Notes: generated by a model not told the origin, from the letters alone. A DNA stretch of 63,819 nucleotides, filler included, from Pelomyxa schiedti (GCA_020536535.1; 7 parts of 7 records of this genome joined end to end with filler, not necessarily neighbours in it), one strand, 5' to 3'. Counted from the first letter of the whole stretch, positions 13,229-34,998 are shown. Made by a program: numbers and translations.

Positions 13229-13328
13229 NNNNNNNNNNNNNNNNNNNNNNNNNNNNNNNNNNNNNNNNNNNNNNNNNNNNNNNNNNNNNNNNNNNNNNNN
13301 NNNNNNNNNNNNNNNNNNNNNNNNNNNN

Positions 13329-18884: not shown

Positions 18885-21800
18885 TTAGTACTTTGATGCG
18901 TTGAGTGCTGCGGACTTTACAATTGAAGTGATTGTTTTGGGCTTAGTGTCACTGACACCTTCAAATAGTCTCTGTAGTACCGCAGTAAGGTCTTCTGGTT
19001 GGTATTTGCGATATTTGTACTGGTGCTTCTTGGAAAATTGCTTGGTGGAATAACTGCAAAACGGGTACGCAAAGTTAGTTGAGCAGGCAGAAAATTTTCG
19101 AGAGATAGGAAAAGAGTGAAACCTCACCTGACGAAAAACATGTTGTAGCGTTGGTGAATGAGGTCTGTTACCATTCCCCGCAGTTCATCACGGAGTTCTT
19201 TGTCTGGAATAACAAACTTTTGTTGTGCATTTACAATACTTTCTACTTCCGAGTTGAATGTCTAGAGGTGATCAGTTAGAACGCAAGTTGTGTTGCACTC
19301 AAAACCTTGAATTTGCTTTTAACCAAGGAGTTGTTATCCACACTTGCGGTGTCCATGGATAATGCGTCACGTGCACGTTGCCAGCTAGTTAAGGTACGGT
19401 TATTGGGAAAAAAAAAGCCAAAGGAGATACCATCTAATGTACATTTCTTTATGCTGACGAAGCATTGCTTCACATCGGCTCACCACCTCTTTTTGAGCAG
19501 AATCGAGTAGTTCACACAGTGGGCTTGAATTGGCAGTCTATGTTTTCATACTGTTAGTTAACTACGACATTCAATTAACGACTAACTGTAAGAATGTAAT
19601 GGACATTGTTCAGCATAAATATTTGGTCGAGGGCATATTTGTCCTTCTTGGCTCTTGCCTGTAAACTCTCAAACAAGACATCCAGAACATTTACTTTAAA
19701 AATGGATATTATGAAAGTGGAGGAGAAAAACGTGACGACTCACAGATGTAACTGACATAAGGAATGCTGTGTCTTGTTTCACCTGGTAAGAGAAAGTTGA
19801 CAACTTCAGTATATTCGGCAAATTTCTTCAGATAATTCATTGTCTACAGAATGTTAGCCACAGCTGTGCAGATTAGGGGAACATTAGAGGTGGTTTCATG
19901 AACAGTCCCATCAGCAGGCATTCCTTGCTTTCCTTTGTCCTTTCCAATGTCTGTACGAAATGCCTCAAAGCACATAGTGGCTGTTTCTTTGTACTAAAAG
20001 ATATCAGTACGAAGGGAAAAATCAGTTGAGTTTACCTTTGTAGCCATGGTAAGAATGATAGTGAAGCACTCAGGACTTGAAGTTTCGAGATCTTTCTTAA
20101 ACTCTGGTAGGAGTTTCCTCAAGTTTTGAAATATGTCAACGAAGAGAAAAACTGCTAGGGGTTTATTGCTGATATTTTGTCCCTACTAATAGGTGAGGTA
20201 AAAACATTGATGTGTGTATCAACCTGAAGAATGTTCAATCCAGTTGTTTCAAAGAGTTTAACCGAGGGGGTGATGATTTGAGTTAAAAGTCCTTTGGACT
20301 CATGTTCAGGTAGATCTGGAAGCAGTTCACGAGAAATGTTGCGTTCGTACTTGAAGAGGTGCATAAGTGTAGTATTGAAGTAAAAATAACTTACTTGAAG
20401 CATATTTGTGATAACTTTAGCAAACACAATAAATGGATGTGACCCAGCAACATAGTTACGGGATAGCCTGTTGGTGTTTGTTTAAAAAAATAAAAACAAA
20501 AAAGAAAAACGGACTTCTCAGTGTCATAAGTCACAATTTTCTCAATATTTAACTTCTCCAGAGATTGTTGTAGGAATAATTTTCTGTGAATCTCATAATC
20601 TTCCTTGAATTTTGTTTTCTTCCCCCATTCAACAAGTTTACTGGTGAGTGTATTGCTTTCATCAATCATTTGAGGAGGAGGGCCTTGGAACCAATTATGC
20701 AATTTCATTGGTACTTAGTGTTACCTTCTACTTGCCAAGTCTCCAAGAACTTCATAGGGTCAATTGGGGCACTGATCCTTTTGATAAGTGAGGTGTACAA
20801 TTTCTCTAGGTTGGTTGCGGCTGTTCCCTTGAGTGTATTCTGAAGGTTTCATTAAGTTAACCAACACATTCGCGATCCAGGGAAACATGCAATTGTTTCT
20901 AAAGCAGTCTCAGCACTTCTAAAGGTGTTGACAGCCCTAAGGAATTTCTCTGCTTCATCAAGTTCATCAATGTCATGATAGTATTGTGCATGGTTGGTTG
21001 AGGGACTGCACGTTTTTAAGAAAGTGTGAGTGAAAAAAGTTATTACCCCTCGTTGATCTTTTCTTTCAGTTTGTCAGGAGTTGAAAGAACATCCAGAATC
21101 TTTTCAATAGATTCCATTGCCACTTCAATATCTATTGGATTCTTAATCAGCTACCAAGCTGCAGTTAAATGAGAAACTTGTATGTAGCCTTTTCAGTTTC
21201 TGGGTGTCTGTGTGCACCTCCTGTGTATTTTCCTCAAGCTTATGTAATCTATTGATGAATGTGTCAAAAAGTTTCCCCTTAAAGAGTCAGGTGCGCACAA
21301 GACATAATTTTCTATACCATTTGTACAGTCTTGTCTTGATAAGAATCAAGAGCATCTCGAGTTGACGTTATCAACTGATTATCATTTTCCACCATGGCTA
21401 GGAGGTCAGCTCTTTATTTTTCATTAGAATTAGGAAAGAAGAGCTGGGTAATGCACTTTGTCTTCTGGGATGCCGCAGTTGTAGTTCTGCCTGTTCTCTT
21501 GAATGTGGTTTGAAGTTCTATTACTTGACGGGCTTCTTCTAAAGTAAGTTCTGTAGTAGTTTTAGGAAAATAATCTTCAAAATAAAAGAAGGTGCACCAT
21601 CTTCTGGTTCAGCCGTTTTCTGCTCCACTCTAGTATCCACATGGTCCTAAAGAAAAGAAGTTAATACTTCAACATAAATAGTCTCACTTCAGTTACTAAA
21701 ATTACACTTAACATTACATAGCAAGATATCTAGGTTTTTGGGTTTTTTTTATTCTTTTTCTCTTTTTAAATAGCATCCACCGCGATGTTATCTGGTCACA

Positions 21801-22452
21801 GAGACACCACCACCACCACCACCACATAAAAGTCACATTCCCAAAACAATCAGAATGGCATGTGACACAAGTTAAATACCGGTTGGGGCTTGCCGTGGTC
21901 TCTGGACCCAGGCACCACCGACGTGAGCACGTCAAAGGCCGCCGCGCCGGTCGTGTTCACGACGCCCTTGATCGACGTCGCGGCGGTGGTCACCAGGCCC
22001 CCCGCCGCGCCCACGCCCTTGGCGAACACCGCGCCCACCATGCCCCCTCGCGGCTTCCCCGCCCCCGTCCCGATGCTCGTGGTGCTGGCGTCCAGGGGGT
22101 TCGAGGGGTCCGCCGCCGCCGGGGCCGCGAGGCCCGAGGCCCCTGCCGAGGAGGAGGTGGAGGTGGAGGTGGAGGACGAGGACGAGGTGGACGAGGTGGT
22201 GAGGGCGCTGAGGAGGTCGGGGTTGATGGACTCGGAGGAGGTGGGGGAGGAGAAGGCGTTGCCGTCGATGCTGCCGCGGCGCTTGCGGCCGGGCAGGCGC
22301 AGGACCTTCTCGGCGCGGGCGTAGGCGGCGGCTGCGGCCTGCGCTGTGTTGGCTCCCACGCGGCCGAGCATCGACGACTCGACATCCTCGTCGCTGTCGT
22401 ATTCGTCCTCAGAGTCGGACAACGCCCACAGTGAGGTGCCGCGGTCCATCAT
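18885..22452 (-). CDS. EXO70: Exocyst complex component Exo70 (EXOC7), many introns
   Basis: Motifs MPADGTVHETTSN|TMNYL, IFMLNNVHYIL and C-terminal KYRKYQPEDLTAVLQRLFEG. Confidence 0.88.
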
Positions 22453-22865
22453 CAATAGCTTTTACGGGAAATGCTGCAAAAAACGGTTTTTATTCTTTAT
22501 CTGAACCTGATTATTATTATCTTATGATTCCGGGTGTGTTCCCTTCTGGAAACACAGAGCTGTTCTTTTTCTCGTTGCTCGCCGACGGAGAGATTTTGGT
22601 TGGGGTGGGGCAGAAGAATATTGTGTGGGAGAAAGAAATCCGTCCTGTGGTTGATGTTGGTAAAATTCTGGTTCCAGCTTGTGATAGCAACTTGTGGCCG
22701 GGCCATCATTAATATCTCTTGTCTACACGCAGCACCAAATCGAAACTTCCCTTTTTCAAACCAGTTGTTTTGTGTTGGAATTTTAAAAAATGGAAGACGA
22801 GGAGTACAGCACCTTAACCCGGTCTTTTGTACCCACAATGCAGTTTGGCAAAAAATTCGTTTTAG

Positions 22866-22889
22866 TTTAACCCGGGAAATCGGGTTAAA
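22866..22889. promoter_or_regulatory. 9-bp inverted repeat TTTAACCCG-N6-CGGGTTAAA just upstream of the CUA tRNA
   Basis: Seen directly. A TTAACCCGG half-site recurs at 22814-22822. Confidence 0.35.
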
Positions 22890-22895
22890 ATTTCG

Positions 22896-23033
22896 CCTAC
22901 AGTAGCTCAGTGAACGCTAGTCCCAACCCAATCCAACCGACACCTCTTCGAGGCCACTGATTGAAACGGGATGTTCCGGTTAGAGCACCAGAGTCTAAAG
23001 CTGGAAACCTGGGTTCAAGTCCCAGCTGTAGGA
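22896..23033 (+). tRNA. tRNA with CUA (amber) anticodon, Tyr-like identity, and a 65-nt D-loop insertion (22912-22976)
   Basis: Acceptor CCTACAG/CTGTAGG plus A73; D stem GCTC/GAGC; anticodon arm CCAGA-GTCTAAA-GCTGG; T arm CTGGG-TTCAAGT-CCCAG; T5 terminator. Removing the insert gives a 73-nt cloverleaf. Confidence 0.8.
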
Positions 23034-23167
23034 TATTTTTGCATTGATTTTTTGTTGGTGTAGCCACGGCGTCCTGTATCTCTGAAAGAAGGGTAACGAA
23101 AAAAGATAACGTAGGGAAAAACCGTGGTGCTCATAATAAATTGTTTTGAAACAACCTGGCAATGCCC

Positions 23168-25017
23168 TCATAGGCTCATAAGAGCCATGCGAGCACGCTG
23201 GACCATTTGAAGGCCAAGGATGCAGTCATCAGTAATGAACCCGTCGTGTCCGTGGACAATTCCGTGCATAAAATCGGTCTCTGCATCAACTGTCCATGTG
23301 AATACTGGCATGAGGTGCCTGTGGGACAGTTTCACATCTGAAGAAAAAAATCCGTGTTAGTCACATGTCAAAAAACATTTGAAAAAAAAAAAAAAACCCT
23401 ACAATCGACTGTCGTTGTTGTGAAAGACTGGCTGAATCCACCCACACCTGTCAAAAATTGGTCACTTAATATCGAGAAAAAGTACTAGCAGCCAATTTCA
23501 GCCTACAAACCTAAATCTATGAGTTGCTCAAAGTAGGCGTCGTCATAAACCGCCGGCTGTGACTGTAGAAGCTGTTTCGATGTGGATGGCAACACTTTGT
23601 CTATGGCGATGGCCTATTTTTTGTAAATCGAAGGCCGTAAGCTCTGACGTAACGGGAAGAAAGTTTACCTCGCTGAGAGTCCAGCACGACGCAATTACGT
23701 TTGCTTGCATTTCGTACTTGTTGACCAAATCTGCAATCTCTTGTTCAATGCCTTCAACTTTGAGATCCATGATGATAAACGTGTTGTAGTTCTGTGTTAC
23801 GATCAACCATAAAAAAGGTATGGTCTCCAAACCAAAGACAACGCAATTCAAAAAGATAAAACGAGAAAAGTGGGAGATACTAAGGATGTACCCACCTTGG
23901 CAAGTTGGAGTGCCTCTTCAAACCGGGGTACGGGTGTGCCAGCGAATTCAGGTCCGAACCACGATCCAGCATCACATGAATCAATATCTTTTTACATGTT
24001 AGTCTGGGTACTTATCATTAGATTCAAAACTTTTAATAGAAGTATTTATTAAGTTCTACTAGTACTTACAGCCATAGTAGGGATTTGCACTAATGGCGCC
24101 AGTGCAATTTGTTGTTCGGTCAAGTGTTGTGTCATGCATTAAAATGACAACGCCGTCCTATGTTGAAGTAAGCACAGAAGGAAAGGCGCATGCCCAACTG
24201 ATGTCAGTTGCAAATCGGTCTCAAATCCATCAGCCAAGTTATCAAGAGCTGCCTGAAAAGAAACCATGGTATTCTCAGGATACATGCTGGGTAAGCCCCT
24301 GTGTCCTATCAGTCGTTAGGGAACTAATACTAGTAAGGAAGTGGCTGACGAACCAATTACGAGAGGTGCAGTTCTGTTAGTGTCTGGAGTAAGTAGACCT
24401 ATGGCATGAAGACAGTGCCCACTAAGAACTGAAACAAACGTCTTGCCATTCCACTCCCACTGGTCTGCAGGCTTCATAAAATAGAAGTAAGATTCTCTCT
24501 CCCTTGGAGGGGGGAAAAAGTGCATACACTATTGGAGGAACAAGTTTCCACATCGGCGTTGGCATAGCTTCCAGTGCAATGCTGCTGAACGTGTAAGCAC
24601 TTATTATCAAGTGCTGTTGTAAGTTGTTTCTAAGAAGTGATTAGGCACAACGATAAACCAAAACGAGCAAAAGACAAGAAAATTACAGTATTTGAGTTGT
24701 AGGTCCACTTTTGATTGGACTTTCCAGTCCCGCACTCATAGAGTTGAGCATTAGCCCCCTCGAATGTCTTATAACTCTCCACATCGAGGCACATCCCATT
24801 GGATATCAGAGTAAAGTCTATCGACCAGGAAGGTTAAACAAAAACGAGTGTGTCAGGTGAGACTGAATAAAGACATACGCCCATCAACAGCATTCAGGGA
24901 CCACTGTTGTTGAGTGTCATCAGAGACACAAGGCTTAACAGCCACGTTGCCGCCGTAAGGGGTACCCCAAACAAGCGCAACAAACGAAACCAACAACACA
25001 CAACGAGAAAGCCGCAT
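23168..25017 (-). CDS. Secreted ricin-B-lectin + glycerophosphodiester phosphodiesterase (GDPD), copy A
   Basis: Signal peptide MRLSRCVLLVSFVALVWG. QxW repeats (QQW, NQKW, DQW; GMCLDV). GDPD motifs G|HRGLPSMYPENTMVSF, DGFETDLQLT, LMHDTTLDRTT, VFTWTVD, DGFITD. Confidence 0.88.
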
Positions 25018-25061
25018 TCACAATATCAAAAGTCCGGTTATGAGAAATATAAAAGGGGCAA

Positions 25062-25109
25062 CCACCCAAAAGCAGCGCGCTTCGATCGAAGCGCGCTGCT
25101 TTTGGGTGG
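25062..25109. repeat. 48-bp perfect palindrome
   Basis: CCACCCAAAAGCAGCGCGCTTCGA|TCGAAGCGCGCTGCTTTTGGGTGG. Confidence 0.95.
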
Positions 25110-25224
25110 GGCAGGATTCTTTTCGTAAGCAGAAGTGGTCTTAGAGACATACGAGAGGAACTAGTAAAGTAATAAATTAAAAAAACCCACAGTGCCATAC
25201 AGCAAAAAAAAACTTAAAAAAGTA

Positions 25225-25296
25225 TGAGGACGAAGGGACTTGAACCCCCAACCGTCAGATCTGGAGTCTGACGCACTACCATTATGCTACGTCCCC
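25225..25296 (-). tRNA. tRNA-Trp(CCA)
   Basis: GGGGACG/CGTCCTC acceptor, TCAGA-CTCCAGA-TCTGA anticodon arm, GGTTCAAGTCC, downstream T-run. Confidence 0.93.
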
Positions 25297-25431
25297 TTGT
25301 TGTTGCCAAGCCAATGGGAAAAACACATCCTCTATAGACAACTTTCTTTTTTTTCCTCTTCTTTTTTTTTTTATGAAGGAAAAGCCCCAAGCAAAACAAA
25401 GGGCTCTGTTCCCTGCTGCTAGCTTTTAGAA

Positions 25432-25503
25432 TCCGATGTGGTGTAGTTGGTAACATTAGAGACTCTCACTCTCTAGCCCGGGGTTCGATTCCCCGCATCG
25501 GAA
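25432..25503 (+). tRNA. tRNA-Glu(CTC)
   Basis: TCCGATG/CATCGGA acceptor, AGAGA-CTCTCAC-TCTCT anticodon arm, GGTTCGATTCC. Confidence 0.93.
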
Positions 25504-25851
25504 GACAACAATAATTTTATATTATATACACACCCCCCAGCCCGCCATAAGACAGAGAGAGACCCGCACAGGGGCCCACATGGTTTTTTCTTTGATTCTC
25601 TCACACACTTTTTTGCTTTGTTACACACGAGCTTCGATCGAAGCGCGCTGCTTTTGGGTGGGGCAGGATTCTTTTCGTAAGCAGAAGTGGTCTTAGAGAC
25701 ATACGAGAGGAACTAGTAAAGTAATAAATTAAAAAAACCCACAGTGCCATANNNNNNNNNNNNNNNNNNNNNNNNNNNNNNNNNNNNNNNNNNNNNNNNN
25801 NNNNNNNNNNNNNNNNNNNNNNNNNNNNNNNNNNNNNNNNNNNNNNNNNNN

Positions 25852-25901
25852 CCCAACCGTCAGATCTGGAGTCTGACGCACTACCATTATGCTACGTCCC
25901 C
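25852..25901 (-). tRNA. tRNA-Trp(CCA), second copy cut by a gap (within a duplicate of ~25079-25375)
   Basis: Identical to the 5' portion of 25225-25296. Confidence 0.75.
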
Positions 25902-26082
25902 TTGTTGTTGCCAAGCCAATGGGAAAAACACATCCTCTATAGACAACTTTCTTTTTTTTCCTCTTCTTTTTTCTTTTCCTTCTTTAAAAAACTGTATGGC
26001 GGCGTTGTGAAATTAATGTGCTTCCAAAGGGAAAGCTGTGCTCATTTTTTATTGGTGTTGGGTTTTAGTGGTACTTGTACTT

Positions 26083-27617
26083 CTAGAAAAGATTTTTCCC
26101 TTTTAGTGGACAGTAGAACCCTGTGCTGGACCGAATGGGGCCAAAGCACTTGTTGCATGACACACAAGCTGATCTGTTTTTGATTAAGTGACTTGGAGAG
26201 GCTGTGATATATGTACCGTGCATTCTCTGGGTCACTTTGCCATCGAAGAACAAGGGTGGGTTCTCTGATGAAAGGGCGGGCTAGTGATATGATATCACAG
26301 GAACCACCAGAAATGAACTCCTTTTGGAAGTATTAGTGTGGGTATGGTGTTTGCTTAACAGTTGGTCACCTGCGCACTTTTTGGTGATCTTATTCCACCC
26401 ACTAAGGCAACAGCGGTGGAGGAAAGGCCTGCGTGAGAAAGGGCTTGCTTCCACGAAGTGGAACCTGTGGCATGGTGACCTTCTTTCCCCTGGGCAACTA
26501 TGGTGGTTCAGTTTTTTTACACAAGGTGTGGCGTATACCAGTTCTACATGATGCAAAAGAAGACATGGATGTTCCTCCACTAGCTTCTAGGAGACAAACG
26601 CCAGCTTTCGCAAGTGCAACAGCAACAACTGTTGACTCCTAAAGGAGTTGTAATTACTTACAGCTGTAGGGGATAGGAGGTACCTCTACTGTCAGACCCT
26701 GCGAATGGAAATCGGCTGTGTTCAGTTTAGCAAGGATCGGATAATTAGGACCAACTTCAGCTCGGACGGCGGCAACAATCTGAGAACCGCCATTGTGTAT
26801 TTGTATAGTGAAAAGTAATGTAATACCTCTAACACCCATTTCAATCTATTTTCGATGCTTCCTCCATGTTCATCGGTCCTCTGATTGAAGAGTGGCGATA
26901 ACCACTGTGATAGTAAGAATCCATGTGCCATATGGAGCATCACAGCGTCAAATCCTGCAGCTTTAACCCTCCTGGCAGCATTGACAAAATTGTTTAATAT
27001 GCGTGCCATGGTGGCAGTATCAGCAGCAATGCAATTGGGTGCCACAGGTTTATCAGGGTTCTCTGACTTAATTTCACAATCACACGGCCCAATACTAGGT
27101 GAACTCATTGATACACGGCCGCCATGATTGATTTGAAGTGCAATGTGACCGCCAGAAGCGTGGACAGCATCAGTCATGCGCCGTAGACCTGCAATGTGAC
27201 TATCATCATATACACCTATTTGTCCCACACCAGTCTGTATTTATTTTAAAAAACCTATGAGAAGTGCTTAAGAAAACCCAACCTGACCATCTTGAGAGAC
27301 ATAAGCATATGATGCAATAATCAGGCCAACATTCCCCTTGGCCAGTTCCACCATTTTTTCAATAAGAACATCAGTAACCTGTTTCACAGAGGAGTGAGTT
27401 TTCCAAAAATGAATGTCCACCTACATGCCCGGTTGCATCAGCCAAGCCTTCCCATGTGGCTGACCTCATTATTCTATTCCTCATTGTTACCTCTTAACAA
27501 ACTATCTTCAGTACCAGAAGCAAACTGCGGTGTAAAAACGATAACATATTTATAATAGATGAATTGTAATGAACCTGTTGTCCCGCTGCGAAGGACAAAA
27601 GGCTGAAACAAACTCAT
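26083..27617 (-). CDS. NADH:flavin oxidoreductase (old yellow enzyme family), multi-exon
   Basis: MSLFQPF..|EVTMRNRIMRSATWEG, ALQINHGGR, AAGFDAVMLHMAHGFLLSQWLSPLFNQRTDEHGGSIENR, VALVGGIRS, ISLARPFIREP, CVSCNKC. Confidence 0.92.
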
Positions 27618-34184: not shown

Positions 34185-34474
34185 CCAACATCTACCAAGG
34201 AAAAACAAGCAAAAAAGAAAATTACAATTTTTACAATTTTATAGTTGGGTACAGGTGGTTGTGGGGTTTTGAGAGTGTGAAATGTGGGCCATGTTTACTG
34301 GCCGATTTGAGAGGAGCCATGTTTACTGGCTTTTGGGGAGGAGAAAAAGTGTACTGATATACCTTGGACACCTTTNNNNNNNNNNNNNNNNNNNNNNNNN
34401 NNNNNNNNNNNNNNNNNNNNNNNNNNNNNNNNNNNNNNNNNNNNNNNNNNNNNNNNNNNNNNNNNNNNNNNNNN

Positions 34475-34998
34475 NCTTGATGTTTTACCGCTTCAAGAAA
34501 TAAAAAAAACGGATGAAAAAATATCCAATTGGAAACCGAATTCTTAAAGGGAAAAAAATTAACCGGGTTTAAACGCCAAAAACATTCAAAAAAAAAAGGA
34601 ACACACAGAAGACCAAGCACTGGGCACTCCCACCCTACCTTTACCTCTTGCAAGCACAACCAATAGCTCCAGTGGAGGCACTGATCAAATTCTCATCCCA
34701 TTCCAACTCTCCGAAACAGCAACCACTCGGCAAAAGCGGAACCTCAAATCCAAATTCAAGTCCAACTCCCGATCCCGCAACACCACAACAACCACAATGA
34801 CACCAGAAGAAGAAGAGCAACTTAGGCGAGAGAGAGTGAAGCAAGACAAGCTGCGGCTCATGGCCAAAGTACGCGGTCGGAAAGCCAGCAAAGCCAAGAG
34901 AGTACTGCGAGCAGTTGCACTTGAGGCCAATGCACAAAAGGCAGCCAAGAGGCAACGCCCAAAGGGGTCATCACCATCCCCCAGTCCCACTCCATCCA
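34475..34998. repeat. Rearranged duplicate of ~30474-30594 joined to ~29948-30357
   Basis: Two near-identical pieces of the preceding region in swapped order, joined in a poly-A run. Confidence 0.85.

Follow-up and report, generated by a model that had tools for sequence, protein, structure and literature searches.

Does the 65-nt hairpin that interrupts the D-loop of a tRNA-shaped gene of Pelomyxa schiedti leave the transcript like an intron, or does it stay in the RNA as an additional arm? The gene lies on the plus strand at positions 22896 to 23033 of the window, by which we mean the whole stretch of DNA that was analyzed (63,819 nt, filler included; assembly GCA_020536535.1). Read from the sequence, it is a class I cloverleaf with the anticodon CUA at 22995 to 22997, and the hairpin, which starts with GAAC and ends with GTTC, occupies 22912 to 22976 between the D-loop nucleotides U16 and C17. 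The initial annotation had weighed an unknown route of excision against a permanent structured domain that could gate when the CUA tRNA works.

The acceptor stem pairs CCUACAG with CUGUAGG, and therefore C22896 is base 1 of the tRNA and G22895 is position -1. The 5' part of the cloverleaf (22895 to 22911, plus strand), as given by the sequence and by RNAalifold, consists of G-1, CCUACAG, U8 A9, GCUC and A14 G15 U16; an A-box-like element, TAGCTCAGTGA, at 22903 to 22913 (+) extends from it into the insert. The insert itself (22912 to 22976, +) forms an arm of four stacked helices, GAAC/GUUC, GUCCC/GGGAU, CAAUC/GAUUG and CCUC/GAGG, in which UCCC at 22921 to 22924 faces GGGA at 22968 to 22971, CAAUC at 22929 to 22933 faces GAUUG at 22959 to 22963 and the apex reads CCUC-UUC-GAGG. 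[quoted passage not shown] Without the insert, 16 + 57 = 73 nt remain and the D-loop reads AGU/CGGUUA, which is the ordinary D-loop and the 73-nt tRNA that had been claimed. The minimum-free-energy (MFE) fold of the insert as a single sequence is exactly the set of helices named, and the coordinates, the complementary ends and the nested helices described earlier are all confirmed. By energy alone, the hairpin would pass as chance: the insert folds with -13.1 kcal/mol (z = -0.74), 42 of 200 shuffled sequences fold equally well, and the whole 138-nt RNA is likewise unremarkable (z = -0.93). It is nevertheless not random, since four intact genes whose flanks differ have the same insert at one and the same place in the D-loop.

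As had been expected, the gene escapes standard annotation. It is absent from the default output of ARAGORN and from the Rfam tRNA matches at the gathering threshold; its RF00005 score is 23.5 bits against a threshold of 29, and at loose thresholds only the 3' two-thirds are aligned. In intron mode, ARAGORN forces a false intron into the anticodon loop and reports the nonsense isotypes Asn, Gly or Trp. Ordinary tRNA genes are plentiful in this genome (about 2160 candidates in a first-look count) and on several contigs are clustered at about seven per 1.5 to 2 kb (L016, G000:C237:34827-37851; L022/L023 on C913; L041/L042 on C1662). Such clusters resemble the tRNA arrays of Entamoeba. The window also contains two ordinary tRNA genes, tRNA-Trp(CCA) at 25225 to 25296 (-) and tRNA-Glu(CUC) at 25432 to 25503 (+), which are arranged head to head 135 nt apart and both appear in the RNA libraries.

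The whole 52-Mb assembly of P. schiedti was searched for relatives, then again with a covariance model built from the family. Five more loci were found; with the window gene, the family comprises four intact genes, a copy truncated at a contig end and a deletion derivative. The window gene (on contig C372) and C202 have the anticodon CUA; C19a and C2236 have CCA. The second CUA-type copy on C372 (11228 to 11296, +) is cut by the contig start, so that the last base of the insert, the 57-nt 3' part and the T-run remain, and its 57 nt are identical to 22977 to 23033. The derivative, C19b, has a deletion between two AACCA repeats that removed its 5' exon and ~20 nt from the start of its insert. 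The insert is at the same site in every copy of the family. Neither an insert-less paralog (sequence search) nor an insert outside the family (BLAST and covariance model) was found in the whole assembly; the covariance model gave no further members, and its remaining matches were ordinary tRNAs at far lower scores. A mobile element such as a MITE, which had been named as one way in which the case could collapse, is thus contradicted by the BLAST search, and an assembly chimera by the four loci with different flanks that carry the junction and by supporting DNA and RNA contigs. One pattern scan for relatives in metagenomes returned a single chance match in a GC-rich bacterial coding region.

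When the CUA and CCA types are compared, the 60-nt flanks show an identity of 45 to 60% (the mean of shuffled sequences is 53%), the inserts of 86 to 94% and the exons of 84 to 88%. Since the insert is conserved like the tRNA body or better while the flanks are randomized, its sequence is under constraint. All four intact genes have a 7-bp acceptor stem, a 4-bp D stem and a T arm with a UUCRA loop, and U8, A14, G15-C48, G18G19, A21, U33, G53-C61, U54U55C56 and A58 are intact. A canonical anticodon arm (5-bp stem, 7-nt loop with pyrimidine 32) was not found; every gene has A31·G39 and G32. The 38 pairs of cloverleaf and arm are kept in all four genes, all 152 pair cells are standard, and two acceptor pairs have changed compensatorily between the subtypes, from U3-A70/A4-U69 to G-C/G-C. 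Indeed, unguided RNAalifold recovers the cloverleaf plus the arm from the four genes, and for C19a the same structure is also the MFE fold of the single sequence. Covariation inside the arm is nearly nil (one change from G·U to A-U and one of loop size), because the four paralogs are too similar for it to be visible.

The parentage of the tRNA body was examined exon by exon and gave no clear parent isoacceptor: the best ordinary tRNAs, Lys-CUU, Arg-CCU and Tyr, are only about 71 to 75% identical. The acceptor end, C1-G72 with A73, is a tyrosine signature that in this genome is otherwise present only on tRNA-Tyr; G-1, if retained, would give a resemblance to tRNA-His. At the base of the arm, the 4-nt bulge (22916 to 22919) reads GCUA in both CUA genes, GCCA in C19a and GACA in C2236, and it contains the gene's own anticodon triplet in three of the four genes. 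This repetition may be due to chance, since there are only two independent lineages.

Is such a gene transcribed like a tRNA gene? Upstream of it lies a PSE-like element, ACCCACAAT (22831 to 22839, +), whose CCCACAA core begins 64 nt before C1, followed by a T/A-rich box, TTTTAGTTTAA (22860 to 22870, +; -36 to -26), that may act as a TATA element; downstream, a T5 run at 23036 to 23040 (+) provides a candidate Pol III terminator. The core, as CCCAYAA, stands at -64 in all four intact genes. In the U6 snRNA genes, the motif is present as ACCCATAA at about -64/-65 from the 5' end in all six examined, but among 48 distinct ordinary tRNA genes the core occurs within 130 nt upstream in only two, and at other distances. 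The CCA-type genes and the U6 genes have an equivalent T/A-rich stretch equally far upstream, and T5 to T10 follow two to three bases past the discriminator in all paralogs. The features of a type-3 Pol III gene, a PSE at U6 spacing, a TATA-like box near -30 and a T-run, are thus present. Since the motif and its spacing are common to the U6 genes and rare at ordinary tRNA genes, the family is, as judged from these sequence elements, driven by a U6-type (type-3) external Pol III promoter, with A- and B-box-like sequences kept. From the fixed -64 spacing and by analogy with U6, transcription should start at about G22895/C22896. A U6-type extragenic promoter is also known from vertebrate tRNA-Sec genes (PMC2943599).

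Two single-cell Smart-seq2 RNA libraries (runs X3 and X4) were analyzed as assembled contigs mapped over 20500 to 26000; the publication on the single-cell assembly and Smart-seq2 transcriptome of P. schiedti makes no mention of tRNAs (PMC8887013). RNA depth over 22892 to 23075 reached 238 in X3 and 287 in X4, and was zero over 22156 to 22891; the neighboring tRNA-Glu reached about 80. DNA runs do cover the ~700 nt upstream where RNA is absent, and the contigs downstream are spliced mRNAs; the signal is therefore RNA and not DNA carry-over, and the suspicion that the locus might be untranscribed falls away. The insert is present with both of its junctions in the RNA contigs of both libraries. 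Contigs with the window's own letters span the border of insert and 3' exon (22976/22977) at a depth of 411/158, and contigs of the C202 and CCA types likewise continue from the insert into the exon.

The ends of the RNA are also visible. In X4, the template-switch oligonucleotide (ending in GGG) abuts 22895/22896, and the 5' end is therefore G-1 or C1, as the promoter predicts; at tRNA-Glu, it abuts exactly base 1. At the other end, A73 (23033) is succeeded in X4 by a C, at a position that is T in the genome, and the Nextera adapter comes next. This 3' end agrees with a cut behind the discriminator and a CCA tail that has begun, with at least one untemplated C. A CCA-type contig of X4 lacks 2 nt relative to C2236 at each of two places, about G19-U20 and G26-C27; it represents either an unassembled paralog or skips of the reverse transcriptase at commonly modified tRNA sites.

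Several other features of the window were noted. Genes of P. schiedti are intron rich, and a gene with spliced RNA contigs at 23136 to 25021 (-) has about 11 exons, introns of 41 to 104 nt and a TGA at 23168 to 23170; its product may be read as an N-terminal ricin-B-type lectin part followed by a glycerophosphodiesterase-like part. An exon of the old yellow enzyme type (Oxidored_FMN) is found at 26722 to 27228 (-). Runs of exactly 100 N at 13229 to 13328, 25752 to 25851 and 34376 to 34475 are probably scaffolding gaps.

The explanation that we put first, with a confidence of about one half, is that a small Pol III-transcribed family makes a tRNA-like noncoding RNA of ~140 nt in which the 65-nt hairpin is a permanent fifth arm and not an intron. 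Between the two readings of the initial annotation, the permanent arm is favored by the insert-bearing RNA contigs, the constraint on the insert and the U6-type promoter, and unknown excision has become the less favored one. The arm would leave the D-loop at the variable 16/17 pocket, and in the CCA genes U16 could pair with A17. A14, G15, G18, G19 and A21 would remain available for their usual contacts, so that an L-shape is possible in which the arm projects from the elbow side. The tRNA body would supply folding, 3' processing with CCA addition and stability, and the sequence-conserved arm would be the working part, most likely a handle for a protein. Such a division of labor has precedents. 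In bacterial YrlA RNA and mammalian mascRNA, too, a tRNA-like module gives processing and stability to a non-decoding RNA, and mascRNA also receives CCA; YrlA, however, has circularly permuted parts and no anticodon arm, mascRNA is released from a long Pol II transcript, and an arm inserted in the D-loop is present in neither. A fifth helix that is tolerated by the L-shape and serves as a protein handle is known from the variable arm of class II tRNAs (Leu, Ser and bacterial Tyr). That arm, however, arises from positions 44 to 48 and has 3 to 7 bp, whereas the one described here arises from D-loop position 16/17 and has 18 bp in four helices.

A search for orphan T arms brought up at least six further PSE-driven genes, in which the parts of a tRNA are circularly permuted (L066 to L070 and L085; G000:C571:61826-61991(-), C890:14607-14774(+), C578:188-352(-), C1014:6876-7041(-), C861:50351-50505(+) and C267:35886-36091(-)). 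Their order is PSE, leader, anticodon arm, T arm, acceptor 3' strand, short loop, acceptor 5' strand, D arm, trailer and T-run, and the trailer pairs with the leader. Anticodons could be read in four of them (GAA, UUU, UUU and UAU), and five match Rfam YrlA below threshold, with E values of 1e-5 to 0.25. No canonical bulge-helix-bulge (BHB) motif that would restore a tRNA from these genes was found. Seven additional matches to a PSE with a B box at the same distance turned out to be six chance hits and one further permuted gene. P. schiedti thus has a wider set of PSE-driven rearranged tRNA-like genes, in which the permuted ones form a second class that is hidden from standard annotation, and no report of permuted tRNA genes in Amoebozoa was found in the searchable, incomplete literature. 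Whether they are tRNA precursors or stable tRNA-like RNAs matters here as well, since the answer would shift the odds for the family with the D-loop arm.

The strongest competitor, though clearly less probable, is that the hairpin is an ectopic tRNA intron, cut out at 16/17 by a BHB-independent route with ligation to 73-nt CUA and CCA tRNAs, and that the 140-nt RNA is the end-matured precursor. Exact removal does leave a textbook D-loop with G18G19 in register in a 73-nt class I tRNA, and the preservation of every nucleotide that makes a tertiary contact in a real tRNA would fit a true tRNA, too. The splicing enzymes exist: tRNA-Tyr(GUA) has an ordinary 14-nt intron at 37/38 that is spliced (the gene is at L016:1501-1587 and at five other loci, which ARAGORN labels "tRNA-???" or "Asn"). 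The permuted tRNA-like genes point the same way, because in red algae such genes are matured by related machinery (PMC3728597). We therefore looked for BHB motifs in the four genes, using the canonical geometry in which each strand has a 4-bp helix and then the bulge and is cut after the second bulge base. Neither a strict nor a relaxed BHB (4-bp helix plus flanking helices) was found within four bases of the needed cuts in any of the four genes, which bears out the earlier failure to draw one that yields the right exons. When bulges of 2 to 4 nt were allowed, the sole motif at the arm base was GAAC/GUUC with bulges of 4 and 2 nt; it is absent from C19a, and cutting there would take away G18 while GAACGC stayed in the D-loop. 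A spliceosomal, ribozyme or snoRNA-type insert was also considered and rejected: GU..AG is missing at usable sites, a C box is lacking, and no Rfam family matches at E ≤ 10.

The missing BHB is not decisive and counts only against the usual route, since the ectopic tRNA introns of the Guillardia nucleomorph mostly cannot form one (PMC3728597). Such introns, described from Cyanidioschyzon merolae and algal nucleomorphs, lie outside the anticodon loop, including in the D-arm, and are missed by standard finders (PMC3728597). The P. schiedti gene resembles them in being a nuclear tRNA gene interrupted outside the anticodon loop that finders overlook. Theirs, however, are short and mostly bounded by a BHB, and their removal was shown by RT-PCR (PMC3728597), whereas the insert described here has 65 nt, is conserved in sequence, has no usable BHB and is retained in RNA contigs. 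A joint that skips 22912 to 22976 was not reported among the assembled contigs of the two RNA runs, which show presence and not absence and in which a spliced 76-nt form could be dropped or undersampled; the contig data are in this sense compatible with a spliced form. Twelve mRNA-intron joints were reported, and 72-nt tRNAs were captured in the same two libraries, which counts against excision; on the other side, Smart-seq2 captures mature, modified tRNAs poorly. In yeast, end-matured pre-tRNAs that still contain their intron can be abundant, and mature ends together with the insert therefore do not prove that this is the final product. What speaks further against an intron is that the insert is at least as conserved as the exons beside random flanks, which is unusual for a spacer, and that excision would yield an amber suppressor, its anticodon stem defective, in an organism with the standard code.

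That the code is standard can be read from the genes. An HSP70 gene ends with EEVD-TAG, ten actin genes have 343 to 375 stop-free codons and end with TAA, and neither about 3,400 codons of actin nor six HSP70 genes contained an in-frame TAG. The eRF1 motifs are canonical (GTS, TASNIKS and YLCDNKF). A code with reassigned UAG is rejected on these grounds; the genetic code is standard and UAG is an ordinary stop. The actin family is very large, with 88 matches in the whole genome, more than 25 of them near full length and most with one intron near codon 30. Routine decoding is probably not the task of the RNA, because it has A31·G39 and G32, because the anticodon differs (CUA or CCA) between sister genes and because a working CUA tRNA would suppress a stop codon that is in use. 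These findings also leave the proposal that the arm gates a working CUA tRNA without support: UAG serves as an ordinary stop, the arm is equally present in sister genes whose anticodon is CCA, and the anticodon arm itself departs from the norm.

Could the RNA, with its arm retained, be a decoder for special purposes? The CUA type would then be a suppressor of UAG and the CCA type would read UGG or UGA, with the arm serving a dedicated factor as handle or brake, much as in tRNA-Sec. We consider this improbable, although several features speak for it: the tyrosine-type identity marks C1-G72 and A73 that are shared with tRNA-Tyr, the apparently CCA-tailed 3' end, and U33 and purine 37, which are kept in both subtypes. 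Moreover, vertebrate tRNA-Sec likewise combines a U6-type external promoter (PMC2943599) with a non-standard D-arm and an anticodon that matches a stop codon. The architectures differ: the fold of tRNA-Sec is 9/4, its D-stem has 6 bp and a 4-nt loop, its variable arm is long and its anticodon is UCA, and the P. schiedti RNA has a 7/5 fold, a 4-bp D-stem plus the 65-nt arm, a variable loop of 4 to 5 nt and the anticodon CUA or CCA. In both, the start of transcription lies at or beside the first base of the tRNA (here, as judged from the end seen in X4). Against such a decoder stand the TAG that ends an HSP70 gene, the lack of in-frame TAG in the actin and HSP70 genes, the canonical eRF1, an anticodon stem that is open at its bottom (31:39) and the abnormal G32. 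The 4-bp anticodon stem of the UGA-reading tRNA-Trp of Blastocrithidia is no parallel, since it is open at the top (PMC13092985) and the stem described here at the bottom. Import into a mitochondrion with a deviant code is moot; COX1 is absent from the assembly and the mitochondrion-related organelles are assumed to be genome-less. A role as primer tRNA of a retroelement was dropped, too, as sites that could pair with its 3' end are not enriched over the control.

We hold it to be equally doubtful that the RNA is the vault RNA of this amoeba, or the RNA of another TROVE-type particle, bound by TEP1 in vaults. P. schiedti encodes three major vault protein (MVP) genes (C352:7606-7944, C810:40381-40783 and C516:26265-26676) and a TEP1-like gene with a TROVE domain, a STAND NTPase, an APAF1-type helical domain and WD40 propellers (L079; G000:C807:26546-33700). 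Vault particles and a vault RNA are therefore to be expected, and no vault RNA is known for them. Vault RNAs are Pol III transcripts of about 90 to 140 nt that have paired ends and A and B boxes of the tRNA type (PMC7904556), to which the ~140 nt and the paired ends of the RNA in question would fit. There was, however, no match to Rfam Vault even at E ≤ 10, and vault RNAs, with their U-tail, differ from this RNA, which has its full cloverleaf and a tRNA-type 3' end bearing an added C. Besides, the PSE-driven, YrlA-like permuted genes are at least as good candidates for the TROVE protein.

Less credible still is the boldest form of a decoding role, a new class of adaptor with a permanent D-loop arm and a promoter of the tRNA-Sec style, in which the arm would recruit a factor and the CUA (possibly also the CCA) member would recode selected stop or UGG codons while the code of this eukaryote is otherwise standard. 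Finally, that the family is a decaying set of tRNA-derived repeats or pseudogenes with an accidental insertion and no function is very improbable: the deletion derivative C19b and the abnormal anticodon arm might suggest it, but it is contradicted by the compensatory acceptor changes, a conserved transcribed region beside randomized flanks, a promoter at fixed distance and the high RNA depth with defined ends.

Both tRNA-shaped RNAs with non-decoding jobs and tRNA introns at odd places are already known. A nuclear tRNA-shaped RNA with a large conserved D-loop arm and a U6-type promoter is one for which no description was found in the searchable, incomplete literature. If the arm is retained, as we prefer, the elbow-side pocket of a tRNA can carry a whole extra domain, which would be a new natural scaffold, and there would be a new RNA to seek in the vault or other particles of amoebae. 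If it is removed, tRNA splicing in the D-loop would take place without a BHB and in a free-living eukaryote outside the algae. Either way, genes of this kind are invisible to standard tRNA annotation.
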